Shown: positions 4,246-54,940, counted from the stretch's first letter. The stretch: DNA of 64,000 bases from Bugula neritina (GCA_964035545.1 OZ037772.1:5584233-5648232), one strand, 5' to 3'. Numbers and translations: made by a program. Notes: generated by a model not told the origin, from the sequence alone.

Positions 4246-4419
4246 GGGAAATTTCTATTACTCATCTGTAGCGCAGTTTCATTTTCAACTTCCTCGCAGC
4301 AGCTTGCAAAGCAGTTTTGAGTAGAACTAGTCCTAGAAGTAGGTCAATCATATCCATTCGATTGAACACAATTACTATTAGAATTGAAGAACCTGAGTCA
4401 CTCAGTGAACACTTTTTTG
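4246..4419 (+). promoter_or_regulatory. Putative promoter and non-coding first exon of TRIM copy A: kappaB-like GGGAAATTTC (4246-4255), ISRE AGTTTCATTTTC (4275-4286), AP-1 TGAGTCA (4394-4400), splice donor after 4419
   Basis: Motifs read directly; conserved in paralogous region 33150-33320; donor ttg/gtgagt and acceptor tgtag 7 nt before the ATG at 4992. Confidence 0.6.
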
Positions 4420-4991
4420 GTGAGTCAATTTTAATTTACCATATTTACATTCAACTTTTACCTCTAGCTATTAGGATTATGGTTATAACATTAAATGTAA
4501 TCATCCATCACATTGTGATTGTCATTAGACTTAGTTTTAAAAATACATCATTGCCACTGTGATTGTCATTGTGATTGTGACTGGCAGATTGCAATGCTTG
4601 CTCTCAGTCCCACTTAACTAATATCAAAATGAATGATAAAGGTATTGTCATTTTCATAATGAATTAATTATTAACTTTAACAATAATAGGTTGAACGTTA
4701 ATGAATCACTAACTGTAAGTTGGTTAACACCACAGTCGAAATGACGACAGCCTCGAACGCAAAGTTACTACCTAGTCTAGTGTCAGCCCTTGCTAGATGT
4801 AGATGTAAATAATTCAATATTAATATCAGATAGTTGGTGATAGAATTGTTTGCTGTTCTTTTAACTTGGGCAATGTCCAAATCTTCTTTTAATTCTCTTG
4901 CCATCCACTTGTATAAGTATTGATAACTGCTCTGAAATCATTGTGATCAACATGATTGTGTCGTCCTAATATGATGTAATTGTAGAACAAA

Positions 4992-7900
4992 ATGGCATCC
5001 AAACCACAACCAATGGTGAGATGTACTATTTGTTTATCTACACTCAAATTAGAGGAATGTAAGGCACTACCTTGTACTCACCCACACTGTGACAAGTGTT
5101 TGAATGAATTCTATGGAAGGCTGAATGCTCTTAAATGTGAAATATGTCGGTAAGTTTATGTCAAAGTCTTTGCTATGTGGTTTTCGCTACGTCTACTGTC
5201 TAGTATATATTACAGTTAATATAATATCACAAGGTGGAACGGAGCGAATTATACTATGAGTGTTGATTGATAAATGTTCTCTAAGACAAAACTAATTGAT
5301 GATCTATCAACAATAAATCAATCATTTATGTTATAGACAAGTGTTCAATACAACACCTGATAAGTTACCAACAGCAGGCCAGATGAAACAGATAGACAAG
5401 TCTATACTCTGTGAAGTCTGTACAAAATCAGGAGAGAATAATACACCTGCTCTGGTGTATTGTTTAGTTTGTTCCAAACTGTACTGTGCTAAACATGTCA
5501 TTGTAAGTTAACAATATTTTTTGTGTTTTCTGTGTATATATCCTTATATGTGATATTTTGAAACTGAAAGCTTGAGATTTTGGTGATACTTTGCAGAGAA
5601 ATAATTTAATGGCTTTGCAACAAAGTATTTACAATATTTGATTTAATTCATTATTCGAAAACATTTATATTTTATTTTCACTTGTTTTCACTCATTTGCT
5701 CACATGAATTGGTTTTGTGTCTTTACCTCCTAACATTTATCGATCAGCATGCTGTAGTTTATTATACATGAGATAAAAGTTATGATCAAGAGACATAACT
5801 GTCAAGATTGTTTTCTTACATTCATGCTTTTATTGTAATAGATTGTACAATATATCTTTAAATAATATTAAATTGTATACTATTGCATATATACTTTAGG
5901 CATTATACGATCATGACATTAGGACCATTATAATATGAATATTATATATGCAATCTTAGATGTAATATCGGTAGTAAGCCACAAACTCTTTTGAATATAT
6001 TTATCTTAGGATCATGATACTTTGTCTGAAGAACATTCTAGAATTAATGTGACAGAATACAAAGCTCGCGCTGCTAAGTTAGAGAAGAAAATGTGTGAGA
6101 CACATGCAGACGTAGAGTATTCTTTGGGTTGTAAAGTCTGTCTCAAACTATTCTGTACTCAGTGTGTACCTACAGCTGGTGTATGTGATGATGGTAAGTG
6201 TCTATTCTTCTGTTTACTTGCTATATATATTACATGATTCAGGTACACAACAGCTTATACATTACTTTGTATATATTACTTCAGGTACATCACAGCATAC
6301 ACTCTTGACATTGAAAGATTTAACAATGCAGCTGGTGGAAATCACAAAGTTAAAGACAAGAGAAGACAACTTATCTGGTTATTACAAACAGATAGCTGCA
6401 AACATTGATGAGTTTCGAACTGAAACCAAGAAGCTGCTGATGATGCTATGGAAACAGCGTGATGATCAGGTGATTATTACATGTTTTTTAAATTTGATAA
6501 TTATAAAGATCATATAGAAACTGTGAGAGTTTGTTTATAACTTTTCTATTATCATCTGAGATAACCTACTTTTTTGGTAAAACTATTCTATCCTGTCTAA
6601 CATTCAATGTGAATGTATTTAGATAGCAGCTATTCAACAGAAGTATGACAAACTAGAGAAAGAACTGGTAGAGAAGAGAGATAAGACTGAAAGTCGAGCA
6701 GTGAATTTCATGGTAGAGGAAGTTGGGGCTAGATATTGTGAGCTGTATAATCACAGAACAGGAATAGAGGCTAAGTTAGACCAATGTCATGAGGTTAGTT
6801 GCAGAGCATATATAGTAGATGTTAGGATCTGTAGCAGTTTTATGCAATATTTCGGTGTCTTTATAAAATTTATATATTTTTTGTTTCTCTATCTGTAATT
6901 AACATCTAAAGATTATATAAGTAGAAAATGGATCAGGTAATGACCAGTAATGGGACTACTATAATATAGGGCTGTCCAACATTTATGCCACCCTCAAAGA
7001 CATAAAGCAAAATTTTTTGCTCAGATATACTAATAAAAGTGGAAAAACACCCTTAATTAAATGCCTTTTTGTATACATTGCTAAAACATACAGCCTGTAT
7101 TAGTTAACAGGACTTCATTGTGTAACAATTTATAGGAATTTTGAATGAAGCAATTAAGAAAATACTGTCACTGTGTTCACAGTTCAAGCTAAGTTTAACA
7201 GACTGGTCGTTGTCATTAGAATATTTCACTTCATTTGCCCTCGGTCTGAAAAGGTTTGACACCCGGTACTATAATGCTATATGACACTGTATTATAATAC
7301 CGTAGGATACTGTATAATACAATAATACCATAATTATTACTTATAATATCATAGGATACTGTATATAGTACTATAGAACATTATATAATACTATACGTTA
7401 CTGTATAATACCATAGAGTACTGTAAACTACTGTATAGGATACTGCAGTATAATAGTTAATAGCATATGATACAGTATAGTGTATAATCGTATAGGACAC
7501 TTCACAATATACTATAGGATAATATTTTATAATACTATATTAGGATGCTGTATTTAATACCATATAGCACACTGTCAAATTTGAAATTTGTGCTTTCTTA
7601 GGGTACAGTTTAATAGCTTAAACTTCACCCATTAGTTTGTAGAAGTCTGTTTCCCTTATACTGCATTGCAATCTCTATCCTTCAATGTTTTGCATTGCAA
7701 TGCTGCTTTTTAGATTTTTTTGTTGGTGTCAAATGTAGCATTGTTGTTGATCTCATTGTCCATACTCGACCCTGACATGCTCGATAATATAAGCAAACAA
7801 CTCCCAAGCACCTGCTACACAGTGTCGCATTGTCTGTATATTTAATATTGTTAGGTTGACATCATCAAGTCATATCGTGATATGAAGAAGGAGATTGATA

Positions 7901-10127
7901 GACTGTTGACAGAAGAGATTCCTAAGTTAATGGATTTTGATTTTGTAACATCAGTTAAAATCAAAGGTTGGTTTTATATGTTATCCATGCAAAATTATTT
8001 AAAACAATATATTGAATAGAACTATAATAAATGGTCATTTTATGACATTTTGTTATGTCTTGTCGTATTTAAATAACATCATCACGGAAGTATATTTTGA
8101 CTTTTAAATTTAGGGTATATATTATGTATGTAAGTTATATGTTGCTAACTGTTACATTTCCTTCGTTTGGTATTTCACTCAATATAAATAAACTCTTGCA
8201 AGTCTATAGTCGCCATCCCTGTGAGAAACTTTTGAGGTTTTTGTTAAAGAGGGCTAAGGACTTATTTAAATGAGGCACAAGAGCAATTATGACTGGATGC
8301 TCTTCCTAGCATCACCAATAGCCTTTGTCCGGGCTCGAATCCTTGACTTTGTGCTTACTGAGCAATCGATCTAACTCATAGACTACGGCTGCTCTCAGAA
8401 ATATGCCCTAAGCGAGGACATATATTTTTAGGAGCAGCCTCAGTTTAGGAATTAGCGTGTTTGACTAGTATTTCACTTTATATATTTGTCTTATAAAAAT
8501 ACATTATACATAATAGTTTAATTTAACATGATGAAAGCATTACTATAATGATATTTTCCAAAACTGGGTTTATACTATTGCCACACTACATCCCTACAAT
8601 ATACTATTACACCATGTTTTGAAGTAAATAATGTTAGTGGGAATCTTTAGTATTTAATTTACACTGAGGAGGAAGTGGCCTACATCTCCCCCAATCTGTA
8701 TACTTCTCTCAACTATTCTATAGATTTACACACTTGTGCAATAGCTGTGCTTATACTCTTGGAGAATACTAATACAAGTTTTTGATGAACATAACCTAAT
8801 TTAATATACTAGTATATCACTAAATAGAATATCATTAGAATTGATTTTAATATTTTGTTGACATGAAGGGAGCTGCTGATTTTTTAAATTTTTTTAATAG
8901 TTGATTCCCATAAAAATAATCTGGTACGGAAAGCAAAATTGCAATTAATATTAATTTTTCAAATGGAAAGTGCACGGTCATTGCAGTGCTGCTATAGCAC
9001 TGCTGTTTGTGTAGTGATGCACCAAAATATTTATGTATATGTTTACATATCTGCTAGCTTTTCTGATGTATCAGCTGTTTTATATTATATTACCATGTCA
9101 TGCATGTCAATATTTTTATCACAGAAGAGCAAAGAAATACAGAGGTTGAGTTGACCAATGAAAGAACAGCAAGGATAACTCCTGAACAAGGACTGGTTCT
9201 CTCACCTCCACCACCCAAGGCTGTAGAACTGATAAAAGCTGTTGAAGTTTCTCCACACTGCTATTCTGTTCACACTTATAAAGGTGTCACATATGCTGGG
9301 TGTTATAGAGGTGTAGACAGGATAGATGAGAACAACAAAGTTACTAAATCATTCATCTCTATTAAAGGTAGCATTGTGTGGAGTATCTCAGTACATAATG
9401 ATAGGATATATACTCTGTCTACTGGCTCTACTGTAAGAGTTCATGACCTTGAAGGGAAGTCCATCACCAGCTGGACTCATACAGATAAATCAGGTCGGCT
9501 GTTTCAGCCGATGAATCAGCTTGCCATCATAAACAATCAGATAGCTATTCCTGACGGGCTGGATAGTACTCTAGTATTCTACTCTCTGAATGGGGAGGTA
9601 GTAAACACTCTACCTTGTCCTCTACTCACTGATACTATTGAACGTCTGTCTGCTGCATATGATAACTCAATTATTATATCACAGTGTGACTCATCTCTAG
9701 TATACAAAATAGACACCTCAACAGGTGACATCATCTGGCAGTGTAAGGAATTGACTGCACCTCGTGGAGTGATCTGCTATAGAGATGAGTTTGTAGTTGT
9801 GGCTGATAATACTAAACCTACCCAACTCTGTGTACTATCATTACATACAGGTTAGTTACTGTGTAGAATACACATATTTGATGTATATGCATTGTAATTT
9901 GATGAAATGAGTTCATACATATTTCTTGCTACAAATAAACTGCACTATCTTTATATTATCTTCAATTCTTAAAAAAACACTGTGTTTTTCTCCTCACAGG
10001 CAAGTTACTAACCAGGATATCTACAGTTGAAACCAGTTACATTCATGATCTACACATCACTGGCTCTATTCTAATAGCTTCAGCATGCTGTTCTTATAGA
10101 CAAGTCAATCTCTATCAGATCAAGTGA
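4992..10127 (+). CDS. TRIM gene copy A (RING-Bbox1-Bbox2-coiled coil-NHL-like beta-propeller), intact, 609 aa; exons 4992-5149, 5337-5502, 6010-6193, 6285-6469, 6623-6793, 7855-7966, 9125-9850, 10000-10127
   Basis: Exon1 CTIC..LPCTHPHCDKC..CEIC (C3HC4 RING); exon2 CEVC..YCLVCSKLYCAKH; exon3 CETH..CKVC..CTQC; helical exons 4-6; ~40-aa beta repeats with PRGV..VVVAD in exon 7. All introns GT-AG, phases consistent. Confidence 0.92.
7268..7570. repeat. Degenerate ~20-bp minisatellite (ctgtataatactatagga..) in TRIM intron 5
   Basis: Repeated tactgtata/atactatagga; same family at 17915-18033, 35830-36110, 45610-45870, 58165-58390. Confidence 0.7.
8180..8467 (-). mobile_element. tRNA-derived SINE-like insertion with 10-bp target-site duplication
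   Basis: gtatttcact flanks at 8170-8179 and 8468-8477; absent from the same intron position in copies B, D, E; minus strand has A-box-like gtagtctatgagttag and B-box ggattcgagccc. Confidence 0.7.
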
Positions 10128-12472
10128 AAGTGAACTGATAGACTGGGATTCTCCAATAAAGGTCAGTAAATTTTGTTGTGAGAGGTACTGAGTGCCTTTC
10201 TAATTCATTTTTCTAAAGCTGCTTTGTATTGAATAGTTTTACATTGCATCTTGTTGTATAATATTGTGTGTTGCACTGCATTTTATTGCATAGAAATATT
10301 ATGACTCTCTATAGTATTTTAATAATATTGTTGGTTAACTATATAGTAGTGTGCACATTATCACCAGTTATCTCCCCTGATTATTTATTAATCAGTAGTT
10401 AAATTATAAAGCAACAGTTTACAATACAGTGTATGTACTAATGTATCATAGTATTGTATTATTATAACATGGCAGATATTGCATATACTAGACATCTCTG
10501 CTATGCTGTGTAGAAAACATCATGTTGAGTCATACATAAGGAGTTATCTTCCTAGTACGTCACTGCTTTAATGAGTCAACTAAGTCAGTTCACTTCACTA
10601 TAGACGTCTGCATGTTTAACTTCCTACTTTACAGTGGACTACTAGACAGGCTATAACCACCAAATTTTACAAGCGCTATTTTGCATTCATTATTATCACT
10701 CAAGTTCTTCTACGGCTGCATTATATACCGGAAAATCCAGGCTATTGTGTGTTATATCAATTATACACAATATATTACTACAAATATGTAAACTTTATAT
10801 AACAATCTTATATCAATATCTTAGATCATTTATGCACAATATATTTCTGTAATGAATCTGTAAACTTTATAGGCTATAAAAGTATTTATTGGTGGTGGCT
10901 ACATATATATTATGTACTTTAAATTTGCAAAAGTTTCTTTGAATTTCCTATTATTTTTTATTCTGACTATAAATTTTGTTATTTGCAATTATCTAGCCAA
11001 ATTAATAGTGTCTATATTTCCTGTTTTAGAAATTACTAATGTATCAGATTTTGTTATTAACATGAACAGGTTGCTTTGTTAGATTGAGATGTGACATGCT
11101 GTGAAGCTGTTTTCAGTTATGATATGGAGTTATTATCAGTATAACAAGAAATAGCACATTATATTCCTTTACAATATGCAGTGCCTTTGATAAAGATTTG
11201 ATTACTTTTTATTTAGCAATTATTTATTCTTCAGCTAATAAAGAGAAATCCAAAATTCCATCCAGTTTCACTTTGTGAATAATCTGTAATTATTTTGTTC
11301 TCGCCCTCTCGAAAATATCACTCATCTATTGGACATGTTACAAATATAGGAATTGGTCAGTAGTTCATAGACAATCAATTTTCATTTAGTATAAACTGTT
11401 TTTAGTACTTTGCAAAAATTCCTTTTTATAAAACGAAGTCGAAGTTATCTTAATGCAAGAGAATAATTTTTTCCTAGAGAATAAAGCCACTAATAATTTG
11501 AATGCAACTAAACTTGCCTTCTCCTCTTCAGCACAGCTTATTATATAATGCACTATTAAGTGATATTATTATATAAGCTGAAATTAAAGCTGTGACCAAA
11601 ACACTAGTTCTACAAAAGATATGGCAGCTGATATTTCTACAAACTTGAACTACCCTTCATTTAGCCAAAAAGCAAAACGACTTCTATCTACAAAGTATTG
11701 GAATACAGAGAATTTCTTTCGCAGTAAGTTATCTTTATATAGAATGTAAATGTTATATAATAAAATCAGAGATCAAGCCAAAAACAGTATCTGCTTTGCA
11801 AAAGTAACTAAATTTCAGATAAAGTTCTGTCAACCATCTTGTTCTGTTCACCAAAACTCTTTAAACATTTCTACAAATTCAAACTGAATTCCATGCAGCA
11901 ACAACAATCAAACTGACGAGTTATATTATATATCAGACCATATGATATAAAATTTAATGATTTAGTATAACCTTTTGTGTGCCTCTTGTAACCTTCCACC
12001 TCTACTATAGTAAACATTGTACAAAGCATGATAATAATATAGTTACTAGTAATTAGAGTTGTATATACTGTGGTGAGTTATCTTATAATAGTATATAGGT
12101 CTAAGCTTGCTGTGTAAGCAGTGAGAAGGGAGTATATTTAATCGGAGTATAGTTATAGAAATATTAGAAGACATGTTCTGTTTTTAATAGTCAACACTGT
12201 TACATGCCCACATTAGGTACAATATTCATATACTTTCACTCAACATATACAAGCAACACTTTACGGAGCTGGTCACATGTTAGTAAAACTAAACTAAACT
12301 AGAAACAATAAACATATTTGGATAAGCTTTACTAGTAAGTCACCCTTTCTTTCATTATACTGGAATAAATCAATATCTCTCAATAGTTGGCAAATAATAA
12401 ATGTTCTATGTATACAATAAGATCTATGATTGCTCTGAATGCACCTATACTCTATAGAATAGATTCACTTTT

Positions 12473-13051
12473 CTGATTGGACACACAAAAGAGAGTTAAC
12501 CACTCCGCCCTAGTCGGAAATTCCAGTTTACATGCTACCTCTGCTACAGTATTCATAAATTTTAACTCAACATATACAAGCAACACTCTATGGAGCTGCT
12601 CACATGTTACTAAAACTAAACTAAACTAGAAACAATAAAAATACATAGATGAACTTTACTAGTAAGTCATTTTGTTTGGAATCCCGAAGGCCCTGTAGCG
12701 TAATTGGTTGTCCCGCCTGCTTGCAAGTCCGGTGGAGGCAATTATTTTACAAGTCACTCTCTTTTTCATTGGTGGAAAAAATCAATATTTCTCAATAGTT
12801 AGCAAACAATGAATTTCTATGTATACATTATGATCTATGATTGCTCTGAATAGACTTATAGAATAGATCCACTCTTCTGATTGGACACACAAAAAGGAAG
12901 GTAATAACTCCGCCCTAGTCTGAAATTCCAGTTCCTTATACAATCAGTCATGAGTTGTTCATGGAGATGCAGTTTCACTTAAGAATGGATTGTTGCAGCT
13001 TTCAGAGGAGTGTGTGGATACAGCACGTACTTCATTGATCATAAGATACAG
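12473..13051 (+). promoter_or_regulatory. Putative type-2 promoter and non-coding exon of TRIM copy B: duplicated CCAAT(ATTGG)-GC box-GGAAATTCC module, IRF half-site agtttcactt (12971-12980), donor after 13051
   Basis: ctgattgg...ccgccc..ggaaattcc at 12473-12524, repeated at ~12877-12930; cag/gtaatt donor; homologous block at 40837-41009. Confidence 0.55.
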
Positions 13052-13480
13052 GTAATTAGTCTAACAACTTTATTACTTTGACTTGTCACTTTTCAGCTGG
13101 TAATTATTTAAATTGCTAGTTTATTTAAAACAAAATACATTTATTCTATTTCAAGTATTATTATTAATGTAGTTGGAAAGCAAAACAATTTTAGTATTTA
13201 TACATTTTATCATATGTTTCAGCTGCTTTAAGCACTCTGGGTGACTTGTAACACCTGTTAGGGGTATTCATATGTGTAGTGTTTTAATATAATGTTGTAA
13301 GTACTGTAGTTACAGTAAAGAAGTTTCCACTATACAGAATATGTTATATAACATAATGAGCATTGGATACTATACTTCTTATATTTATGCTATTTAATAA
13401 AAAAACACATACCTATTGTACTTGTGTTATAATACCTGAAAATAAAAATGGCACTTATACTAATCTACTTGTAGGACAAA

Positions 13481-16400
13481 ATGGCTTCTAAACCACAACC
13501 AATGGTGAGATGTACTATTTGTTTATCTCAACTCAAGCTAGAGGAATGTAAGGCATTACCTTGTACTCACCCACACTGTGACAAGTGTTTGAATGAAATC
13601 TATGGAAGGCTGAATGCTCTTAAATGTGGAATATGTCGGTAGGTGAATAATATCATAACATATAGTATAATATGTTACATAATGTCATACATTTCATAAT
13701 ATAATCTTTATCAATAATTTCATGGTTCATGCTATGTACAGTAGATATCCCAATTTATATAATATTAACAAGTAGAATAAGCCGATATTGGCATATTTGT
13801 ATCATAGGTAAGAATTTTTATAAGAATTTTATTTGTATTATAGGAATTTTATTATTTGCAGTATATATAATACAATCAGGTGCTTTACGTAGATACAGTA
13901 TTGTGAAGATCGTTTTGATTGCTACCACAATTGCAGTTGAAGGTCATTAGAGTAGCGTTTCAGTAATTTTAGTGCTTAATATGGAAAGCTACCTTGTTAA
14001 TCACAATGTCTCATAAAGTTTCACTACATTTGAGGTCCTAATCGGCACTACAAAGCTGGTCTCAATTTTTTTGTTTTAAGTTTTTGTAAGTTGAATTATT
14101 CACAATGTAATAAAATCATCATTAAGTAGATTAGGTTTGAAAGTAATTTCATTGTTCGAATGTGTGGAGGTAGTTTTTAGGCAGTTTTTCAACACCTGCC
14201 ACCTTCTTAGATTTAGATTGTGAATAGTAGATGAATGTATTGGTATGAGGAATGTTAAACAAAACACGCTTTGTTTTCTTATTCTTTTGAAAACTAGTCG
14301 AGCTTTTATAGTTTTGTGAGTGAAGTAGTGATAATATAAGACACAAGAAACACAAAGAAATTGCACCCAATAGATGGATTGTTACATACAATGTAACTCT
14401 TTTATTTTCTAATTATTCCAATCCTTTAATTTTTAGTTGCATGCATAGCCAAGTCCTATAACCCAGTAGCTGTATGATTTGAATCAAGTTTATTTTATCA
14501 GGGCAGAATCACAATAATAAATGTTCGTACTGCCACATGATTTATTATATGTAGTCTGTTGTGTAATAAAATATATCTTATAATCAGGTGGTGCTATAAA
14601 GAAGTTTGCAAATCGTAAATTTGTCTCATTGTGACATTATAGTAGGAGTTGTGTGACTTAATATGGCAGCTTTGAGATGAGTTGTAATGTATCCTGTACA
14701 GAGACCTATAGTTTGCTTTACTGTGAATTCAACAGGGATATTGTATGTCAGTATGACATGGTACTATAACCAGAGTGTAGGGATTTAGATACCGATAGTT
14801 GTATATCATAAATGATTTACAAAAAGAAGAGGAACACAGTTATTTGATTGACTGAATGTTGATAGCAAGCTTTCTTACTTAATCCTTAAGTCAAAGTATT
14901 AGAATGTATTCAGGTTGTCAATGACTACGTTTAAATCAAAAGCTAGTCAGTTCAAGTTCTCCAATGTAATATATTAGAGATCAATGGAGCATATCAATGA
15001 GATGTAATGCCTTACTAAACATACTTTGTTATTGAACAACCTGAATGCTATTTGGAAATAACTTAGCTTTTCTAGTTATAGAAAGTTGTGACAATAGAGA
15101 AAAACAACATTAATAAACACTGAGATTTGTACACAATTGTTCTATTGTTATTTGTTCAATGGAGATCTTTGATTTTTTAACTCTATTATTTTTATGAATA
15201 ACTTGTACAATGAAGCATTGGTTCAGTAATTGTGTATAGAGTCGAATAGATTTTATCAGAATAATTTGTCACAATAATAAATATTATGCAAAGCAAGACT
15301 GAGTGCTAAATGTGTTTAATCAAAGCACTCCGAACCAATTCCATTTTACTATGACATGTTTAATGCAAGTTTACATCATCCATAGAATATCCCAGCGCCA
15401 ATATTACTAAAAGTTGCATGTCATTTGATATATTGAGATGTGTAAAATAGGAGCTAGTAAAAATTATTTTCAAAAGACTTTGAGAAATGTTTGTTCAGTC
15501 TACAGATCTATATAGTTGTTCTACAGTGGCTTATAGATGGAAACATTGTTCTCCCTATACATAATCAAAAGTGATACTGTTAATATGGAAAGAGCCAGCA
15601 TTACAATATTCTCTTCTTGAAGAATTTATAATGGCACATTTTTTATGTCATAATATATTGGAATATTCAATTATATCTCAGTTTTACTCTACAGAATATT
15701 TGAACGCTTTTATAAGACGCAAGCAAGTTTGTTCTAGAAACAACTTTGAATTAATTTGAAATTTTTGATTGCTTGTTGGTAAAACCTATAACAGGTTATA
15801 TAAGGCTAGTGGCATTTTAGAATTATTATTAAAAATTAATTTTAGGATTTCATTGCATGCTATTTTTAGCCGCAATAGTTGCAACACACAAGAGCAACCA
15901 TGGTCTAGACTTTAGTGTTGCTCTAATCATGTGTAGTGAGTCTTACATGGGTCTAATTAAAAAAAAATGTATACACAAGGGCAGGTATTTTAAGATAAGC
16001 AGGATTTTAATTTAGCAATAATAAATTTAGCAATAGTTGGTTATTTATTATACCTTGTTGTATCATTGTATCGTAACAAAACTTATATAGCAGATAATGT
16101 TGCATGTATTCATCATTTATATTACAGACAAGTGTTCAATACAACACCTGATAAGTTACCAACAGCGGACCAGATGAAACAGATAGATAAGTATATACTC
16201 TGTGAAGTCTGTACAGAGTCAGGAGTGAATAATACACCTGCTCTGGTGCATTGTTTAGTTTGTTCCAAACTATTTTGTGCTAAACATGTCATTGTAAGTG
16301 AACACTCAGTAATTGTTTTCTGTATATGTTCTTTTATGTTTAGTATAACTGGATAGGTGTAGCAACCCGCTTTGTTTCAAAATAGTATTAAATCAAAAAT

Positions 16401-24662: not shown

Positions 24663-26937
<2,275 letters not shown>

Positions 26938-27879: not shown

Positions 27880-28062
<183 letters not shown>

Positions 28063-30075: not shown

Positions 30076-30186
30076 GCACTGTATTCGGTGTCTATCATCC
30101 CACCTATTATGTCGATTTTTGTTTCTGTTACATGCTTGTGAAATGAGTGTTTTTATCACTCGACTGTATTATTACTAGAATCACAG

Positions 30187-41009: not shown

Positions 41010-41384
41010 GTAATTAGTCTAACAAGTTTATTAGTTCAACTTGCCACTTTTCAGCTGGTAATTATTTACATTGCTAGTTTATTTAGAAGAAAATACATTT
41101 ATTCTATTTCAAGTATTATTATTAATGTAGTTGAAAAGCAAAACAATTTTAGTATTTATACGTTTTATCATATGTTTCAGCTGCTTTAAGCACTCTGGGT
41201 GACTTGTAGCACCTGTTAGGGGTATTCATATGTGTAGTGTTTTTATATAACCTTGTAAGTACTGTAATTACAGTAAAGAAGTTTCCACTATATAGTATAT
41301 GTTATACAATATAATGTGCATTGGATACAATACTTCTTATATTTATGCTATTTAATAAAAAAACACATACCTATTACACTTGTG

Positions 41385-44300
41385 GAAGGCTAAAAGCTCT
41401 TAAATGTGGAATATGTCGGTAAGTGAATAATATTATAACATAATAGTATAAAATGTTACATGCATAATGTCATATATTTCATAATATGTTTATCAATAAT
41501 TTCATGGTTCATGCTATGTACAGTAGATATCCCAATTATTTCTATAATATTAACAAGTAGAATAAGCCGATATTGGCATATTTGTCTTATAAGATGTTTT
41601 ATAAGAATTTATTTTGTATTATAAGAATTTTTTTATATGCAGTATAGATAATACAACCAGGTGCTTAATTTTATGTAGATACAGTATTGTAAAAATTTGT
41701 TTTTATTGTGACTACAATTGTAGTTGAGGTCTTTAGAGTAGCGTTCCAGTGATTTTAGTGCCTAATACTGAAAACTACTTCAATAATCAACATGTCTAAT
41801 AAAGTTTTGATATTTTACTTATGCTAAGGTTAAGGTCATGACCGGCACTATAAAGCTGGTCTTAGTTTATATTTTATTTTAGGGTTTTTGTAAGTTGAAT
41901 CATTCACAATGTAATAAAGTCATCATTAAGTAGATTAGGTTTGAAAGTGAATTCATGGTTCGAATGCCGTTGTAGTCTTTTGGAAGTTTTTCAACACCTG
42001 CCACCTTGTTAGATTTAGATTTAGATTGTGAGTAGTAGACAAATGTATTGGTATGAAGAATGTTAAACAAAACATGCTTTGTTTCCTTATGCTTTTGAAA
42101 ACTAGTTAAACTTTTCTAGTTTTCTGAAGTGGTGATAGTATAAGACACAAGACGCACAAAGAAACGGCACCCAATAGATCTGTTGTTACATACAATATAA
42201 CTGTTTTATTTCATTATGCTATTCCTTTAATTTTTGGTTGCATAACCAAACCCTACAACCCAGTAGCTATGGTTTGAGTCAAATATACTTTATCAGAGCA
42301 GAATCCAAATAATAAATGTTTGCACTGCCACATGATTTATTATATGTGGTCTTTTATGTAATATAATATATCTTATAATCTGGTGGTGCTGTAAATAGGT
42401 TTCAAACCGTAAATTTGTCTTATTGTGACATTATAGTAGGAGTTGTGTGACAATATGGCAGCTTTTATATGAGTTGTATAATACATCCTATACAGAGACA
42501 TATAGTTTGCTTTACTGTGAAGTAAACAGGGATATTGTATGACACTATGACATGGTACTATAACCAAAGTGTAGGAAAACAGATACAGATAGTTGTGTAT
42601 CATAAATGATTTACAAAAAGAAGAGGGAACACAGTTATTTGGTTGACTGAATGTTGACAGCAAGCTTTGTTACTAAACCCCTAGAGTCAAAGTATTAGAA
42701 TGTATTCAGGTTATCAATGGCTACGTTTAAATCAAAAGCTAGTCAGTTCAGGTTCTCCAGTGTAATATATTAGAGATCATTGGTGCATAACAATGAGATG
42801 TAATGCCTTACTAAACATACTTTGTTATTGAACAACCTGAATGCTATTTAGAAATAGCTTAGCTTTTCTAGTTATAGAAAGTTGTGACCATAGAGAAGAA
42901 CAACAATAATAAACACTGAGATTTTCACACATTTGTTCTACTGTTATTTGTTCAATGAAGATCTTTTATTTTTTACTTTATTATTTTTGTGAATAACTTG
43001 TACAATAAAGCCTTGGTTCTTTATTGTGTATAGAGTCGAATAGATTTTATCAGAATAATTTGTCACAATAATAAATATTATGCAAAGCAAGACTGAGTGC
43101 TAAATGTGTTTAATCAAAGCACTCCGAACCAATTCCATTTTACCATAACATGGTTAATGCAAGTTTACATCATCCATTGAATATCACAGCACCAATATTA
43201 CTAAAAGTTGCATGTCATTAGATATGTTGAGATGTGTAAAATAGGAGCTAGTATAAATATATTTTCAAAAGACTTTGAGAAATGTTTGTTCCATCTTCAG
43301 ATATACATAGTTGTTCTACAGTAGCTTATAGATGGAAACATTGTTCTCCCTATACATAATCAAAAGTGATACTGTTGACATGGAAAGAGCTAGCATTACA
43401 ATATTCTCTTCTTGAAGAATTTATAATGGCACATTGTTTATGTCATAATATATTGAAATATTCAATTATATCTCAGTTTTACTCTACAGAATATTTGAAC
43501 GCTTTTATAAGACGCAAGCAAGTTAGTTCTAGAAACAGCTTTGAATTAAATTGAAATTTCTGATTGCTTGTTGATAAAACTTATTATAACAGGTTATAGG
43601 CTCGTGGCATTTTAGAATTGAATGATTTTTGAATATTAATTGTATGATTTCATTGCATGCTATTTTTAGCTGCTATAGCTGCTAAAAATATTATGCAACA
43701 CACAGGAGCAACCATGGTCTAGATTTTAGTGTTGCCCTAGTCACGTTTAGAGGGTCTTACATGGGTCTAATTAAAAGAAAACTGCATGTAAACACAAGGG
43801 CAGGTATTTTAAGAAAAGCAGGATTTTAATTCAGCAATAATAAAACTAGCAACAGGTGGTATTTAACTATACCTTGTTGTATCATAACAAAACTTATACA
43901 GCAGATAATGTTGCATGTATTCACCATTTATATTATAGACAAGTGTTCAATACAACACCTGATAAGTTACCAACAGCAGACCAGATGAAACAGATAGATA
44001 AGTCTATACTCTGTGAAGTCTGTACAAAGTCAGGAGTGAATAACACACCTGCTCTGATGTATTGTTTAGTTTGTTCTAAACTATACTGTGCTAAACATGT
44101 CATTGTAAGTTAGCACTCTTTAATTTCTTTTTGCATGTTTCCCTTATGTGTTGTAAAACTGGATAGCCGTAGCAACTGGCTATGTTTCAAAATATTATTA
44201 ATCCAAAACCTCTGGGTTTTTGTTATGTTTTACTGACAAACAATTTGCTGGTTTCACAAAAAAAACTCTGCAATATTTGATAAGATAACTTTTTAGTTTG

Positions 44301-47300
44301 GTAAATGAAATTATTCATTCGTTTTCATTCATATGTTCACATGAATTAAAATTTTGGAATGTATTGATCAGCAAATATCATAATGTGAGTTGTTATACGT
44401 TGGATAAAGTCATGATCAAGTGTACATACAACTATCAAGACTAACTAATTATAACATTTGTGGCACTATAACATACTATATGCTGTGTAATATGGCTTTA
44501 TATATTTTTTGAACGAGTTGTGCAATTTTGGATGTATATTTTCTACATTATAGCATAATGACATAGCCATTAAAATACATATACATGCTTTTTTATATAT
44601 AATGTCATCAATTATAAATTAAGTACTACTCTATAATATAACTTTGTTGTAGGATCATGACGTTGTGTCTGAAGAACACTCTAGAATTGATATGACAGAG
44701 TATAAAGCTCGTGCTGCTAAGTTAGAGAAGAGAATGTGTGAGACACATGCAGACGTAGAGTATTCTTTGGGTTGTAAAGTCTGTCTCAAACTACTCTGTA
44801 CTCAGTGTGTACCTACAGCTGGTGTATGTAACGATGGTAAGTGTCTATTCTTCTGTTTACTTGCTATATATATTACATGATTCAGGTACACAACAGCTTA
44901 TACATTACTTTGTTATACTTCAGGTACATCACAGCATACACTCTTGACATTGAAAGATTTAACAATGCAGCTGGTGGAAATCACAAAGTTAAAGACAAGA
45001 GAAGACAACTTGTCTGGTTATTACAAACAGATAGCTGCAAGCATTGGTGGGTTTAGAACTGAAACCAAAAATCTATTGGTTTTGATAAGGACACAGCGTG
45101 ATGATCAGGTGATTATTACATGGTTTTTAAGTTTGATATAATTATAAAGATCATATTATAGAAGCTATGAGAGTTTGTTTATAGTTCTCTGTATAAACAT
45201 CTGAGATAAGTTACTTTTTTGGGAAATGTAAGATGATTATACACTCAGACACTCTTCAAATTTTTCTAGCTTGTCTAACATTTAATGTGACTGTATTTAG
45301 ATAGCAGCTATTCAACAGAAGTATATGACGAACTGGAGATAGAACTGGTGGAGAAGAGAGAAAAGACTGAGAGTCAAGCAGTGAATTTCATGGTAGAGGA
45401 AGTGGGGGTTAGATACCGTGAGCTGTATAATCACAGAGAAGGAATCGAGGCTAAGTTAGACCAAAGTCATGAGGTTAGCTACAGAGTATAGATGAATAGT
45501 AGATGTTATGGTGTGTGTATCTGTGGCAGTTTGATATTTTATATTTAACATCTTATATAGATCATTCAAGTAATATAAATAGATATAATGTAATGAAAAG
45601 AATTCTCGATACTATATGGAATACTGCCTAATACTACAGCATACTGTATAACACTAAATAACACTGTATAATACTATAGGACACTGTATATAATACTATA
45701 GGATACTGTATAATACTATAGGACACTGTATAATACTATAGAGTACTGTATAATACTATAGGACACTGTATAATACTATAGGATACTGTATAATACTATA
45801 GGACACTGTATAATACTATAGGACACTGTATAATACTATAGGAAACTGTATAATACTATAGGACACTGTATGATCCATGTAGGGCACAGCAGATATTTAG
45901 TGTAAAGTTTGCCCATTCGTTTGTAAATGCTTCTTGTTCTAAATTGTGCTTTTCACTCTCAATATTGCAATTTTTTGCATTGCAACGCATATTAATGCAA
46001 TGCTGTTTTTTAGATGGTTTTGTTGGTTTCAAATACAGCATTGTTGTTGGTCTTATTGTTCATACTCAAAACTGGCGTTTTCTATACTAGCATACAACTT
46101 CCAAACACCTGCTACACAGTGTCACATTGTATGTATATGTAATATTGTTAGGTTGACATCATCAAGTCATACCGTGATATGAAGAAGGAGATTGATAGAC
46201 TGTTGACAGAAGAGATTCCTAAGTTGGCACATTTTGATCCTGTAACATCTGTGGAGGTCAAAGGTCAGTTTTATATATGTTAAAGGTCAGTTTTATGTTA
46301 TCAATATGCAAAACTACCTGAAACAAGATATTGAATAGCTTAATAACCCTATTTATTTTTATGACACTTTTTTATCTAACCGTATTTAGGTAACATAATC
46401 AAGTAAGTATATTTTGACTTTTGAATTTGAGGTATATATATGCATGTTATAGCTATAGCTATGTTTCAAACTGTTACATTTTTATCATCTTGTATTTCAC
46501 TTTTTTGATCTGTGTTGTAAAAATATATTATAAATACTGATTCAAACTAACGTGATGTTAAGGCACTATTATTTTCAGAAACTAGGTTTTTACTATTGCC
46601 ACACTACACCTCTATTATACGTACACCCCTACAATATCTTATTAAACCAGGTTATATGGTAAATATAGTTAGTGGGAATCTTTAGTATTTAATTTACACT
46701 GAGGAGGACGTGGCCTACATCTCCCCCAATGTGTATACTTCTCTCAACTATTCTATAAATTTACACATTTGTGCAATAGCTGTGCTTACTCTTGGAGAAA
46801 ACTAATACAAGTTTTTGGTGAACATAACCTAATTTAATATAGTAGTATATCACTAAAATAGAATATCATTAGAATTGATTTTAATAATGTGTTTACATGA
46901 ATGCAGCTGCTGCATTTTTTCTGCAGTAAACTTTTTTCAATAGTTGATTCCCATAAAAATAATCTGGTCAAAAAAACCAAAGTTATACTATTTATTTTTA
47001 AATGGAAAGTGCATGATCATTGCAGTGTTGCTAGCACTGCTGTTTGTGTCGGGATGCACAAAAATATACATGTATGTGTACATATCTGCTAGTTTTTCTG
47101 ATGTATCAGCTGCTTTTATAATATATTACTATGTCATGCATGTCGATATTTTTATTACAGAAGAGAAAAGAGATATAGAGATTGAGCTGACCAATGAAAG
47201 GACAGCAAGTATAACTCCTGAACAAGGACTAGTTGTCTCACCTCCACTGCCCAAGTCTATAGAACTGATAAAAGCTGTTAAAGTTTCTCTGGGCTGCTGG

Positions 47301-49798: not shown

Positions 49799-50925
49799 TT
49801 TGAGTGCAGCTAAATTAGCCTTTTTATCTCCAGTTTATTTTATAATGCACTATTAAGTGATATTATAAGCTGAAATTAAAGCTGTGACCAAAACACTTGT
49901 TCTACAAAAGATATGGCAGCTGATATTTCTACAAACCTGAACTACCAGCAAAACGACTTCTATATTTACTAAGTATTGGCATACAGAGATATTCTTTTTC
50001 AGTATGTGATCATATTGTTTATAATTTAATGTTATATATCAAAGTCAGAGATCAAGCCAAAACAAAAAACTAACTTTCAGATAAAGTTCTGTCAACCATC
50101 TTGTTCCGTTCCACCAATACTCTTTAAACCTTTTTAAAAACTCAAACTGAATTCCATGCAGCAACAACAATCAAACTAATATGTTATATTATATATCAGA
50201 CCATATGATATAAAACTTAATGCTTTAATATAACCCCTGTGTGCCTCTTGGAAGGTTCCATCTCTGTTATAGTAAACATTGAACAAAGCGTATTATAGTT
50301 ACTAGTAATTAGATAATTGTGTACTGTGATGTTTTATCTTATTATATTATACAAGAAAGCTGTTTAAGCAGTTGAGGGGAACTATCTTTAGACTGAGTAG
50401 TTATAGAAATTCATTAGGAGACATTTTTTGTCTTTGATAGTCAACAATGCATGTTACATCATTTATAATATTTATGTATTTTCACACAACATATAGAAGC
50501 AACACTTTATGGAGCAGGTCACTTGTTAGTAACAGTAAACTAAAGTAAAAATAATAAATATCTCTGAGGGAGCTTTACCAGTAAATAAGTCATATTTTCT
50601 TTTATTGATAGAAGCAAAATCAACATCATGCAATAGTTGGCAAATAATTGGCTTCTATATGTACAATAAGATCTATGAATGCTAATAATTAACCTATAAA
50701 AGAGATCTACTATTCTGATTGGACACACAAAAAGTGAGTTTATTTATAACTCCGCCTTAATTGGATATTCCAGTTTCCTGCAATTAGGTAATGGGTTGTT
50801 TATAAAAGTTCAATTCCTAAGACTTGGCTTTGTAGCTTACAGCTGTCGATTTAGGGTATAGGCACACTTACACTATTTTTTTCCTTGATTTCTATACAAT
50901 AATTGTGCTCATAATTATGGGGATT

Positions 50926-51085
50926 AAGTTTCTAACTAAGACATCTACTGAAAAAACTACATACCTCATCTAGATTGGCTCTACTCTAGTAGTTCCAGCA
51001 AGCTCTTGTATAAAAGGGACAAGTTAAATTATATCAGCTGAAGTGAAAGTGAACTAATAGACTAGATACTCTAAAAAGGGTCAGT
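50926..51085 (+). pseudogene. Orphan remnant of TRIM last exon and 3' flank
   Basis: ggctctactctagtagttccag...cagctgaagtga matches exon 8, with indels and no upstream exons. Confidence 0.85.
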
Positions 51086-52231: not shown

Positions 52232-52670
52232 TTGTTATCAGATTAACTTCATTTTACATAAAGTAATTATTTATGTCAAGTTAACTCAGGTTCCCCCCCA
52301 GCCCTATATTCAATCACATACTTACCAGTAGTTATTTGCATTTTCTATAATCCTTGATTGACAGAGCTGCAGCAATATTTGACGTGCAGCCTCATAATTG
52401 TTTATGTATTAAAAATATTAAATTATTCTCTACTCAAAATTAACAATGTGTTATAAACTGTTGAAATATACATACTCATTTAAAGATATGAATACTTGAG
52501 ACCGGGGATGTAGCGGCAAAAATATTCTAGGCCATACTCTCAGGCTGGGGGTCCAGGGGGCCGCCCAGCTGCCGAAGCCCAACGCACAAAGTATGTGACC
52601 TTCGCAATTCACAGGTTTATCACCAAGTTGCATGCATTTTATAACAGTCATAAATGCCATATTATGACTC

Positions 52671-54760
52671 TTATCACACTTGGTAAACATTACGCAGGGC
52701 TTTAAAGCAGATAAGGCTAAATAAGGGAGAAATAAAATTCCCTCAAATTAAAATTTTTGGCAAGCCAAATGATAAGAATGATGGGAGTAGAATATGGACA
52801 GGTGGCCCGTTGTGCCCCATGCACATGGCCAACTTGAAAAACAAATGTATACGGTAGCTGAATGAAAATTGCTTTCGAACTTGCTATTATAATATACTAG
52901 TTAATTAAGGCAGATACAAGCAATGACGACAATATATGTTAAAAGAAACTATAAACTAAAATAAACTAATTTCTCTTGCATTTCTATTGACTTTTTGTAC
53001 CCCCTATGGCCACTGTGCCTGGTTACCACTACTTTCCAAATTTACAATTGTGCCTTTTAGGATTTACTTTCTTGCATTAATTATGCATTTCTAAATAGTT
53101 CTGTATGTTGTTTTTAAGCTTCATGTGTGAAAGCGAATAGTTAATACAATAAAGTAAACAAGCACCATGGTGACCAAACATCAAACATCTCGTTGAATCA
53201 ATTTTTTGAATAGTTGCTAACTCATGATATTTAAGAATACTGGCACAAAAAATGTGTTACAAATTCAACTGTCGGCAATCACAGTTGTTGTTGAAAACGC
53301 TTAAATGCTTAACTTACAGTATATAGTTTTTAACATCAAGATGAAAAATCTCAAAAATTATTAGTAATCTCTGTTATAATTATGCATTATATAATTAAAT
53401 TACAACCATTATAATATTTTGAATGAGCTTTTTGTTACAATGAAGTAGGCATAATGGCTTCATTAATGCTGACAAACAACAACTGAACCCTCGTATGTTT
53501 ACTCAGCTCTAAAAGCAATCTCAACACACTAACTCTTTGTATGGCAAGTTATCAACAACTTAAGTGTATTTTACAGCTATCATAAATACCAGGTGATCCT
53601 TTATCACACTTGGTAAACATTACGCAGGGCTTTAAAGCAGATAAGGCTAAGTAAGGGAGAAATAAAATTCCCTCGAATTTACATTTTTGGCAAGCCAAAT
53701 GATAAGAATGATGGGAGTAGAATATGGTCAGGTGGCCCGTTGTGCCTCATGCACATGGCCAACTTGAAAAACAAATGTATACGGTAGCTGAAGGAAAATT
53801 GCCTTTGAACTTGCTATTATACTAGTTAATTAGGGCAGATACAAGCAATGACGACAATATCTGTTAAAATAAACTAGGCTAGCTTGTTTTGTTTGAGTTT
53901 AAAAAGCTAAATGCTTGGATGACATCTTGAAAAGTTACGAGTCCTTAAAAAAAACATGGACCCACTTACTTAAATTGTAAGTTCACCAAGTGCTAAAAAA
54001 CAATGGCTGAAAAATTATCTAATTTTTTTAAGATAAAAACACAACTCTAAGTCAACAATTTCTCTTGAGGTTCCATTGACTTTTTGTACTCGTATGACCA
54101 CTGTGCTTGGTTACCATTACTTTCCAAATTCACATTTGCGCCTTTTAGAATTTATACTCTTGCATTAATTATGCATTTCTATATATTTCTGTATGTTATT
54201 TTTAAGCTTCATGTGCGAAGGCGAATAGTTAATACAATAAAGTAAACAATCACCATGGTAACCAAACATCAAGCATCTCGTATCAATTCCTTGAGAAGTT
54301 GCTAACCAATGATATTTGAGAACATCATTACAACAAATTGCGTTACAAATTCAACAGTCTGGCATTCTTGGTTGTTGTTTCAAATGCAAATACTTAACAT
54401 ACAGTATATATAGCTTTATAACACCAGGATGAAAAATGTCAAGAAATGTAATGAGTAATCTCTGTTATAATTATGCTCTATATAATTTTACCATCATTAT
54501 ATTTTGATTAAGCTTTTTTATACAATGAAGTAGGCATAATGGCTTCATTATTGCTGACAAACAGCAGCTGAACCCTTGTATGTTTACTCAGCTCTAAAAG
54601 CAATCTCAACACACTAACCCTTTGTATGGCAATGTTATCACCAACTTAAGTGTATTTTGCAGCTATCATAAATACCTGGTGATCCTTTATCACACTTGGT
54701 AAACACTAGACATAGCTTTAAAGCAGATAAGGCTAAGAAGGGGAGCAATAAAATTCCCTC
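52671..54760. repeat. ~1 kb tandem repeat, about 2.1 units (starts ~52671, ~53601, ~54688)
   Basis: ttatcacacttggtaaaca...ctttaaagcagataaggctaa recurs three times, with homologous interiors. Confidence 0.85.
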
Positions 54761-54790
54761 ATCAACTATTTCAAAGTTTTACTGAAGAGC

Positions 54791-54940
54791 AGTTTCCATT
54801 TGAACCATCAGTTTCACTTTCGAGTTCGTAGAGGAAACTTGTAGGGAACATTTACCTTCAAATTGAACAGTCATCTATACTCACTCAACTCAAATTTGAA
54901 TCAACTAACTAGAGTTACTAGGTGAATGCTAATTGTGCTG
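54791..54940 (+). promoter_or_regulatory. Type-3 promoter and non-coding exon of TRIM copy E with ISRE AGTTTCACTTTC (54810-54821); donor after 54940
   Basis: Exact ISRE consensus plus agtttccattt at 54791; ctg/gtaagt donor; no similarity to type-1/2 regions. Confidence 0.55.

Follow-up and report, generated by a model that had tools for sequence, protein, structure and literature searches.

An IRF-like word common to unrelated leader cassettes of a tandem TRIM-type gene family in Bugula neritina

Three non-homologous leader cassettes (T1, T2 and T3) that precede the genes of a tandem TRIM-type family in Bugula neritina have a single word in common, CAGTTTCAYTT (CAGTTTCANTT). A fourth cassette, T4, which is new here and was not seen in the initial annotation of this DNA, carries the tandem element GAAGTGAAAGTGAA. 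The sharing of the word among the cassettes is probably not due to chance. The cassette words may be sites for one of the IRF-family factors of this genome, by which the family would be co-switched after pathogen sensing, a reading to which we give a probability of about 0.4. Positions are counted from the first letter of the window, i.e., the whole stretch of 64,000 nucleotides that was analysed.

The gene family and its leader cassettes

The window comes from an AT-rich invertebrate genome and contains five tandem genes (A to E), members of a 31-copy family arranged in two arrays on the same contig. The family architecture consists of a RING finger, two B-boxes, a putative coiled coil and an NHL-like propeller. 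The RING exon matches zf-RING_2 with E=4e-5 (24 bits, under the Pfam cut-off of 27) and the B-box exon matches PF00643 with E=1.6e-4 (22 bits, under the cut-off of 24); a second B-box-like exon is also found in the family genes. NHL clusters are the nearest Atlas clusters of the last exon (score 0.94), and its Pfam propeller matches are weak only. The parts of a TRIM protein are in the right order, but each domain is below its curated Pfam cut-off, and the earlier assignment of these genes to the TRIMs appears to hold at the level of TRIM-type genes. The coding exons considered are:

4986-5143, plus strand: gene A exon 2, with the acceptor, the ATG at 4992 and the RING finger
9100-9855, plus strand: last exon of gene A, an open frame that codes for an NHL-like beta-propeller (the Atlas NHL match was obtained with the paralogous exon)
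13475-13632, plus strand: gene B exon 2, with the ATG at 13481 and the RING finger
19290-20021, plus strand: gene B last exon, NHL-like beta-propeller
55520-55677, plus strand: gene E exon 2, with the ATG at 55526 and the RING finger; RNA contig pieces and joints
56045-56213, 56844-57026, 57121-57304, 57492-57662 and 58700-58811, plus strand: gene E exons before the last, by RNA joints
59722-60448, plus strand: gene E last exon, NHL-like propeller; RNA GT..AG joints and exon-restricted depth

Upstream of these exons lie the cassettes:

4214-4419, plus strand: T1 leader cassette of gene A, with kappaB-like GGGAAATTTC (4246-4255), the ISRE AGTTTCATTTTC (4275-4286), TGAGTCA (4394-4400) and the donor GT (4420-4421)
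12440-12640, plus strand: extra, distal copy of the T2 promoter part, 5' of gene B, with GGAAATTCC at 12516-12524; 85% identity with the proximal copy
12877-13051, plus strand: proximal T2 leader cassette of gene B, with ATTGG (12880-12884), a GC box (12907-12914), TGAAATTCC (12921-12929), TACAATCAGTCAT (12939-12951), the IRF half-site AGTTTCACTT (12971-12980) and the donor GT (13052-13053)
33118-33317, plus strand: T1 leader cassette of gene C, with GGAAATTTC at 33151, the ISRE (33179-33190) and the donor at about 33318
40837-41009, plus strand: T2 leader cassette of gene D, with GGAAATTCC (40881-40889), CAGTTTCC (40889), AGTTTCACTT (40929-40938) and the donor GT (41010)
50618-50803, plus strand: T2b, a diverged T2-like module 4 kb 5' of gene E, with ATTGG, CCGCC and ATATTCCAGTTTCCTG; the T2 donor position is mutated
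50972-51079, plus strand: T4 cassette, with ATTGG (50975), TATAAAAG (51009-51016), initiator-like TCAGCT (51034-51039), PRDI-type GAAGTGAAAGTGAACT (51039-51055) and the donor AGG/GTCAGT (51079/51080)
54663-54940, plus strand: T3 leader exon of gene E, with a GGGAATTTT-type word (54750-54758), CAGTTTCCATTTG (54790-54802), the ISRE AGTTTCACTTTC (54810-54821), inverted GGAAACT (54833-54839) and the donor GT (54941-54942)

The words reported earlier for T1 are all present, GGGAAATTTC at 4246 and 33150, AGTTTCATTTTC at 4275 and 33179, and TGAGTCA at 4394 and again at 4421, as is AGTTTCACTTTC in T3 at 54810. For T2 the report was right in part: ATTGG (at 40840 in gene D), the GC box (CCGCC at 12910 in gene B) and AGTTTCACTT are as placed, and GGAAATTCC is proximal in gene D only, gene B having it in the distal duplicate and TGAAATTCC in the proximal copy. 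T1 is represented by ten full paralogous copies and one partial (90-97% identity) and T2 by eleven full copies (77-92%). T2b has a second copy at 63272-63443 and T4 at 63608-63718. T4 is built of CCAAT, TATA, an initiator-like word and a predicted 44-nt exon, and in six of nine cases a T3 cassette follows it in the same orientation, 2-4.7 kb further 3'. Its 13-mer GAAGTGAAAGTGAA is kept in seven of eight copies, and 9 of the 26 genome-wide matches to it belong to the two TRIM arrays. Some genes are preceded by more than one cassette, complete or partial: gene B by two T2 promoter copies, and gene E by T2b, T4 and three T3 5' parts.

T1, T2 and T3 each terminate in a GT donor. As had been claimed, the three 5' regions are non-homologous, since blastn of the T1, T2 and T3 modules against each other (word 7, E<=0.01) yields no mutual similarity. 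Between cassette types, homology starts about 10 nt 5' of a shared acceptor, ttgtag/RACAAAATGG, which is located 6 nt 5' of the ATG. The suggestion that the donors could join an acceptor just before the ATG holds for T1 and T2, whose leader ends are joined to the common acceptor in RNA-run contigs: the 3' end of the gene A T1 exon is linked to exon 2 (X6 record 16), and so is the T2 exon end CATTGATCATAAGATACAG (X2). These contigs cannot place start sites, and they cover the T1 and T2 leaders over the last 34 and 20 nt only. On T3, RNA-run contigs lie at 54678-54868 and 54686-54909 and the following intron is empty. An acceptor-like tgttttgcag (4204-4213) stands directly 5' of the gene A T1 cassette, and a similar tattttgcag (54653-54662, its AG at 54661-54662) adjoins the 5' end of T3.

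Recurrence and conservation of the IRF-like word

The earlier claim that an IRF-type word recurs across T1, T2 and T3 is upheld and extends to T4. The ISRE GAAANNGAAACT is exact in T1 (4275, 33179) and in T3 (54810). T2 has the IRF half-site AGTTTCACTT only (12971, 40929), which fits AANNGAAA and is exact in 7 of the 11 copies. From the word to the donor GT there are 145 nt in T1 (donor 4420), 81 nt in T2 (13052) and 131 nt in T3 (54941), in agreement with the 80-170 bp or so given previously. When three random non-homologous 250-mers of the window are compared, an 11-mer with one wildcard is common to them in 1.1% of 30,000 trials, and exact 8-mers are common to such triples in 13% of trials. 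The ISRE consensus has three matches in the window vs 0.2 expected from shuffles; the genome rate predicts about 0.005 matches per 3 x 200 bp, and two of the three cassette types hold one. CAGTTTC occurs nine times in 2.4 kb of cassettes vs five times in the remaining 61.6 kb, a 47-fold higher density. All motif counts rest on only three or four independent sequences. CAGTTTC is also present outside its defining sites, in T2b (50771), T3 (54790) and gene D (40889). In the window CAGTTTC is biased 14:7 to the sense strand, with all nine cassette copies on the plus strand, and AGTTTCANTT is in sense throughout (9:0). Orientation is not required for IRF sites.

Genome-wide, AGTTTCNNTTTC (ISRE) is not in excess (1668 vs 1953 for the reversed control), nor are CAGTTTCAYTTTC (128 vs 187) and GAAGTGAAAGTGA (26 vs 44), a result that goes against the proposed ISG-like regulon. 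Among the first 100 matches listed for a 13-mer, none is near the RING exon of another TRIM subfamily. An exact ISRE is found in 8 of the 10 T1 paralogues, in 0 of the 11 T2 paralogues and in 2 of the 9 T3 paralogues. Paralogue footprinting does not bear out the idea that the motif was selectively retained: ISRE columns are not better conserved than their flanks (71st, 25th and 20th percentiles in T1, T2 and T3), whereas the T2 CCAAT box reaches the 96th percentile. Within the word, conservation is higher in the 5' part, CAGTT, than in the TTTC cores, and in T2 and T3 no other part is conserved as well. T3 contains three GAAAC cores in 52 nt, two of which are kept in 8-9 of nine paralogues; AGTTCC replaces one GAAA core in five of the nine T3 copies.

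The kappaB and AP-1 motifs that had been noted alongside the ISRE do not hold up, and these kappaB-like and AP-1-like words are outside any supported mechanism. None of the 30 cassette copies that were examined contains the kappaB consensus GGGRNWYYCC, its single match in the window (10145) being outside the cassettes, and the relaxed form GGRAATTYCC with one mismatch has 4 matches vs 2.1 expected. The kappaB-like word of T2 differs in nearly every paralogue. An AP-1 site (TGASTCA 5' of the start) is not supported: the TGAGTCA at 4394 is inside the spliced leader, where the RNA contig has CGAGTCA, and that at 4421 coincides with the splice donor, G/GTGAGTCA (GTGAGCCA in six of ten paralogues). 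As for the trans factors, invertebrates have IRFs, and this genome encodes at least two IRF-domain genes (PF00605 above cut-off at C3:5.606 Mb and C1:11.78 Mb) and at least two Rel-homology genes (PF00554 at C9:4.686 Mb and C1:16.85 Mb, likewise above cut-off).

Candidate readers of the word

In the mechanism that we consider, each coding body starts at the common acceptor and takes a spliced non-coding leader from T1 or T2 or, presumably, from T3, or T4 5' of T3. The cassettes have in common an orientation-specific GAAAC-type word, CAGTTTC[A/C], which reaches the full ISRE consensus in T1 and T3 and is replaced in T4 by a PRDI-type tandem. The predicted IRF sites would coincide with the transcription starts or follow them closely, within the leader or the proximal promoter, and this placement may allow the whole family to be turned on together upon pathogen sensing. 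The motifs do not appear to be classical upstream elements, since RNA contigs lie over the T3 motif and a position of +4 to +20 is predicted for that of T4. The T3 contigs start at about 54675-54686 and span the ISRE at 54810, and the latter therefore appears to be part of a transcribed leader rather than of an upstream promoter; a location 5' of the transcription start is not supported for T3. The family may form a regulon resembling that of interferon-stimulated genes (ISGs). A wider proposal is doubtful, though conceivable from the sequences: that the 31 TRIM-NHL-like genes of this animal, neither arthropod nor vertebrate, make up one IRF-controlled, interferon-independent ISG-like battery, in which at least four unrelated cassettes would have gained or kept GAAA-repeat IRF elements at start sites, selection having kept the word, not the promoter sequence, during cassette exchange.

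It is unlikely, but deserves attention, that the word is a core-promoter initiator (YCAGTT) at the start of each leader, its likeness to an ISRE being incidental. The initiator (Inr) consensus is TCAGTY in Drosophila and YYANWYY in mammals, and the YCAGTT core, the strict sense orientation and the location one typical first-exon length 5' of the donor are all Inr-like, the sequence fitting in T1 to T4. With starts at the word, the first exons would measure about 146, 82 and 132 nt, and the better preservation of CAGTT in T2 and T3, with variable TTTC cores 3' of it, is in keeping with this. CAG-type starts fit the family because T4 has a perfect TATAAAAG 27 nt 5' of TCAGCT. However, the word exceeds an Inr in length and has tandem TTTC cores; a second TTTC at an exact 2-nt spacing, found in T1, ancestral T3 and the T4 tandem, would be needless in an initiator. 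T1, T2 and T3 lack a TATA at -30, and T3 RNA begins 5' of the word, contigs from two independent runs reaching about 130 nt 5' of both CAGTTTC copies. Genome-wide, the combination of CAGTTTC, N120-150 and a strong donor is 3-fold commoner than in the control, but a general initiator role is not supported because a small number of repeat families account for most of this excess.

No better odds attach to the word being functionless, an AT-rich, post-hoc pick multiplied with cassette duplication that would reflect chance or descent of the leaders from a very ancient common source. The lack of genome-wide enrichment, the conservation no higher than that of the flanks, with the motif decayed in the majority of the T3 copies and in one third of those of T2, the small number of independent sequences and the frequency of 8-mers common to random triples are all compatible with it. 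Against it are the 1.1% of the unbiased 11-mer test, the extra independent occurrences in T2b, T3 and gene D, the separate tandem GAAA element of T4, and the fit of the word to one specific, biologically apt motif among very many possible. A reader other than an IRF seems improbable. AGTGAAAGTG is recognised by PRDM1/Blimp-1-type repressors, and AAGTGAAAGTGA is present in T4; alternatively, the T3 and T4 motifs, being in transcribed or predicted-transcribed leader, could act as a leader-RNA feature. In line with the latter, GAAAGTGAA in the exon of T4 could pair by complementarity with TTCACTTTC in that of T3, and AGTTTC of T3 pairs with GAAACT further 3' in the predicted fold. Nevertheless, the T3 leader folds no better than shuffles (z = -0.81) and T4-to-T3 splicing is putative.

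Relation to known systems

If the words are IRF sites, the closest parallel is with the ISRE/IRF-E of vertebrate interferon-stimulated TRIMs, whose ISRE is exact in T1 and T3, and with the PRDI of the IFN-beta enhancer, of which T4 has GAAGTGAAAGTG. The putative target genes, too, are of the TRIM E3-ligase type and form an amplified family in tandem. To our knowledge, neither interferon nor ISGF3 is known in this system. Unlike in vertebrates, the sites are in or beside spliced non-coding leaders, not in mapped upstream promoters, the site of T2 is no more than a half-site, paralogues do not preferentially conserve the sites, and the accompanying kappaB-like words are off consensus in 30 of 30 copies. 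Invertebrate IRFs activate ISRE-containing promoters, as described for shrimp LvIRF (PMC8784814), and a cGAS/STING-TBK1-IRF axis has been described in oyster (PMC8218723). The present case resembles these antiviral programmes in that IRF and Rel are encoded and ISRE-type words adjoin putative immune genes; it differs in resting on sequence and steady-state RNA contigs, whereas induction, knock-down and reporter data are available there (PMC8218723, PMC8784814).

Rather than as the outcome of promoter swaps, the 5' regions are more aptly regarded as alternative leader cassettes that the two arrays have in common. The clustered protocadherins and UGT1A have banks of alternative promoter/first-exon cassettes that are spliced to a common exon 2. 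Similarly, unrelated non-coding first exons join here one acceptor a few nt 5' of the ATG, and more than one cassette or partial cassette precedes genes B and E. In contrast to these banks, where a single constant region can draw on many cassettes, each cassette type in the window is mostly bound to its own gene copy.

The leader cassettes and the genes they serve

The host genome comprises 216 Mb at 32% G+C, and the window carries five tandem copies (genes A to E) of one gene, all on the same strand. Coordinates without a contig name are window positions; C7 and C8 are contigs, C8 being OZ037772.1, on which the window spans 5584233-5648232. The parts of the gene are as follows:

RING exon: zf-RING_2, E=4e-5
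Two B-box-like exons: PF00643, E=1.6e-4
Coiled-coil-like exons: between the B-box and the last exon
Long last exon: closest in the Atlas to clusters of NHL propellers (score 0.94), which are commonest in molluscs

Since none of these domains reaches its curated cut-off, 'TRIM-NHL-like' serves here as a label, well founded on the predicted domains but short of proven membership. A genome search with the RING exon as query returned 31 close paralogues (identity at least 74%), 30 of them on C8 in two arrays and one on C7:

C8 5.41-5.78 Mb, + strand: array of the window
C8 10.12-10.36 Mb, mostly - strand: sister array

Compared with gene B, about 176 nt are missing from gene D (B 13427-13602 is without counterpart; 41359-41485 in D). 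The exon-2 acceptor, the ATG and the greater part of the RING exon have gone with them, and the RING exon of D is absent from the matches of the genome-wide search. Judged by its sequence, D is either a pseudogene or a variant without a RING. A coding gene between D and E was considered and rejected, as a convincing open frame is lacking there. Upstream of the T1 genes (319-1410, 29864-30219), T1 being the leader cassette of genes A and C, there is a 28-nt minisatellite, and one of 20 nt occupies the same intron of C and D (35829-36214, 45609-45954). In front of each T1 cassette lies one and the same conserved sequence, about 1 kb long (3120-4200, 32000-33100), which follows the 3' end of a duplicated C2-domain (synaptotagmin-like) gene part. 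This indicates that the T1 genes and that fragment were duplicated as one unit.

The initial annotation described three unrelated promoter types: T1, T2 (genes B and D) and T3 (gene E). The sequence observation itself stands: the motif words it quoted were all found in place, and blastn detects no similarity among T1, T2 and T3. Similarity between types begins about 10 nt before the acceptor that they share, ttgtag|RACAAAATGG, with exon 2 reaching its ATG after 6 nt. One attribution holds in part only. GGAAATTCC, assigned to both B and D, is proximal in D (40881), but in B it occurs only in a distal duplicate of the T2 promoter part (12516), the proximal copy reading TGAAATTCC instead.

Four sequencing runs were mapped to gene E (54600-60500). 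Coverage by X1, X2 and X6, guessed to be RNA and drawn from three studies, is confined to the predicted exons, with GT..AG joints at 56213>56844, 57026>57121, 57304>57492, 57662>58700 and 58811>59722; X8 covers the whole region and behaves as DNA. Loose ends at the exon-2 acceptor carry either the T2 leader end CATTGATCATAAGATACAG (13033-13051) or a T1 leader end, a variant of 4386-4419. Because these RNA contigs place both leader ends directly on the exon-2 acceptor, the donors and shared acceptor proposed for T1 and T2 are real, and both leaders are first or early exons that do not code. This alternative-leader architecture of a TRIM array is newly described here.

An insertion of about 100 nt interrupts the T2 upstream region (12665-12765) in 4 of 11 T2 copies, namely B, D and two in the sister array. 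The one in gene B looks tRNA/SINE-like by eye; a tRNA-derived SINE was rejected because ARAGORN finds nothing. A TATA promoter upstream of T1 (CCAAT at 3800, TATAATATAG at 3854, donor at 3896/3897) was likewise discarded, since its exon would measure only about 12 nt.

Recurrence and conservation of the IRF-like word

The three types had been said to converge on ISRE/IRF and kappaB motifs, with TGAGTCA noted in T1. The convergence is probably real for the IRF-like word CAGTTTCAYTT, which lies 145 nt (T1), 81 nt (T2) and 131 nt (T3) upstream of the donor, and fails for the other two components. The strict kappaB consensus is absent from all cassette copies (GGGRNWYYCC fits none of the 30), and its relaxed forms occur at background rates. 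As for AP-1, one site lies in an exon and the other is the splice donor itself; across the whole window TGASTCA is in excess (42 versus 16), with most copies outside the cassettes.

CAGTTTCANTT is the longest word that all three 250-nt regions share. Among random non-homologous window triples (30,000 trials), such an 11-mer is shared in 1.1%, compared with 9.8% for a 10-mer and 13% for an exact 8-mer. At the genome rate, 3 x 200 bp should hold about 0.005 ISRE matches. On the window's + strand CAGTTTC occurs 14 times, nine of them in 2.4 kb of cassette sequence, including sites that played no part in defining the word: 50771 and 63411 in T2b, a diverged T2-like module, the second T3 site (54790) and the second D site (40889). 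All nine window matches of AGTTTCANTT fall on the gene strand. From this clustering and strandedness we conclude that the recurrence is real and orientation-specific.

Genome-wide, none of the ISRE 12-mer, the 10-mer core, the 13-mer and the PRDI 13-mer is enriched. Comparison with the reversed controls thus indicates that the words are not generally favoured. Near the RING exons of other TRIM subfamilies no 13-mer match was found among the first 100 matches listed, none of which is on C8. Other TRIM arrays of this genome lie, for example, at C8 4.2-4.7 Mb, C8 about 7.0 Mb and C5 16.4 Mb.

Table. Genome counts of motif words and of their reversed controls.
Word; genome; reversed control
AGTTTCNNTTTC (ISRE); 1668; 1953
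AGTTTCAYTT; 4734; 4343
CAGTTTCAYTTTC; 128; 187

A footprint of the cassettes, new here, was obtained from a paralogue panel assembled by DNA searches of the same genome; all copies lie in the two arrays.

Table. Cassette copies, exact motif matches in full copies, and conservation percentile of the motif columns within each alignment.
Type; copies; identity; ISRE 12-mer; AGTTTCAYTT; percentile
T1; 10 full, 1 partial; 90-97%; 8/10; 9/10; 71st
T2; 11 full, 8 diverged partial; 77-92% (full); 0/11; 7/11; 25th
T3; 9 full, plus partial copies of the first 100 nt; 84-95% (full); 2/9; 3/9; 20th

The CCAAT box and donor of T2 stand at the 96th percentile. Five T3 copies read AGTTCC and have thereby lost one GAAA core, and within the IRF-like word conservation is better for CAGTT than for the TTTC cores. 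These percentiles and exact counts show no sign of selection on the ISRE as such, in a panel where many changes were inherited by several copies and independent events are accordingly few.

A fourth cassette and the T3 leader

A further cassette, T4, is reported here for the first time. It has eight aligned copies in the two arrays, and two copies lie in the window:

50972-51079: T4 copy 1, TATA/initiator cassette with a 44-nt exon
63608-63718: T4 copy 2, TATA/initiator cassette with a 44-nt exon

Its parts run in the order ATTGG, TATAAAAG (or TATATAAG), TCAGCT 27 nt further on, GAAGTGAAAGTGAACT and the donor AGG|GTCAGT, by which it is a textbook TATA/initiator promoter with a predicted 44-nt exon. 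The 13-mer GAAGTGAAAGTGA is kept in seven of the eight copies, and of the 26 places where it occurs in the genome, 9 are in the two TRIM arrays. T4 adds to the family an independent GAAA-tandem element, for which transcript positions +4 to +20 are predicted. The cassette is located about 230 nt downstream of T2b, and in six of nine cases a T3 cassette follows on the same strand, 2-4.7 kb downstream of T4.

For T3 itself, low-depth contigs from two studies cover 54678-54868 and 54686-54909, while the intron behind is essentially empty; no T3 joint is listed among the RNA joints of gene E. The sequence holding the T3 ISRE (54810) is thus present in RNA, and what had been taken for a promoter motif upstream of the start lies within RNA-covered sequence. 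As contigs cannot give transcription starts, this new observation is suggestive, short of proof, of T3 being a transcribed leader. An acceptor-like tattttgcag ends at 54662, its AG kept in all nine T3 copies. Together with the position of T4 and the RNA coverage, this suggests that T3 may be an internal leader exon fed from T4.

Partial tandem duplicates of the T3 5' part (52617-52745, 53315-53674; 79-88% identity) keep its acceptor-like site together with the word GGGA..AAAATTCCC and lack the ISRE part. A structured T3 leader RNA was rejected on its folding score (z = -0.81). GAAAGTGAA in the T4 exon (51039-51055) and TTCACTTTC in the T3 leader (54812-54821) are exactly complementary; the two could pair if both exons belong to one transcript. 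Between gene B and a PTGES2-like gene, TTAGTTCAGTTTCACTTCAGCTGATA (23380-23420) corresponds, in reverse complement, to the T4 initiator/PRDI region and looks like an orphan T4 fragment in opposite orientation.

Possible readings of the word

The initial annotation proposed an ISG-like regulon of the three promoters under IRF and NF-kB. This is partly supported, in that the IRF-like word recurs and the kappaB and AP-1 parts do not hold. The leading reading, to which we assign a probability of roughly 40%, is that the tandem GAAA words would serve as IRF-type response elements in the cassettes. T1, ancestral T3 and T4 have the tandem GAAA spacing, which an initiator does not need, and three GAAAC cores cluster in T3. 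The genome also encodes the presumptive readers, with IRF-domain and Rel-homology matches above the Pfam cut-off at two loci each, the IRF ones at C3 5.606 Mb and C1 11.78 Mb. A shrimp IRF activates ISRE-containing promoters (PMC8784814) and a cGAS/STING-TBK1-IRF axis is described in oyster (PMC8218723), so that an IRF-driven antiviral programme in an invertebrate is already a known kind of thing. Against IRF sites stand the lack of selective retention, the lack of a genome-level signal and the transcribed position of the motif. That the word has no function is rather unlikely. Some other GAAA reader, or a role in the leader RNA, seems improbable. A core-promoter initiator is about as unlikely as a word with no function: the single orientation, the conserved CAGTT and the plausible exon lengths speak for it, but RNA is found upstream of the word in T3, and the genome-wide excess of CAGTTTC-N120-150-GGTRAGT (243 versus 83) is for the most part owed to a small number of repeat families.

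If the GAAA words are true IRF sites, the locus would be a compact natural experiment in which unrelated cassettes drive near-identical immune-type E3 ligase genes, each with the same response element. This would support an ancient IRF-to-TRIM link older than interferon and, in an animal group whose immunity has hardly been studied by functional methods, would supply short oligos and reporters that lend themselves to tests. Should the word be an initiator instead, it would define the core-promoter grammar of the family. On either reading, the alternative leaders and the T3 'promoter' as transcribed leader matter for the annotation of these arrays.

A dispersed, near-identical repeat with at least 25 copies on contigs C1, C2 and C3 starts with CAGTTTCATTT(T/C)ATTAAAAAA, and a strong donor follows after about 150 nt. 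Ten of the copies cluster at C3 14.8-15.8 Mb (e.g. 14785877-15816500); the repeat may represent a transposon, or else serve some other amplified family as its leader.
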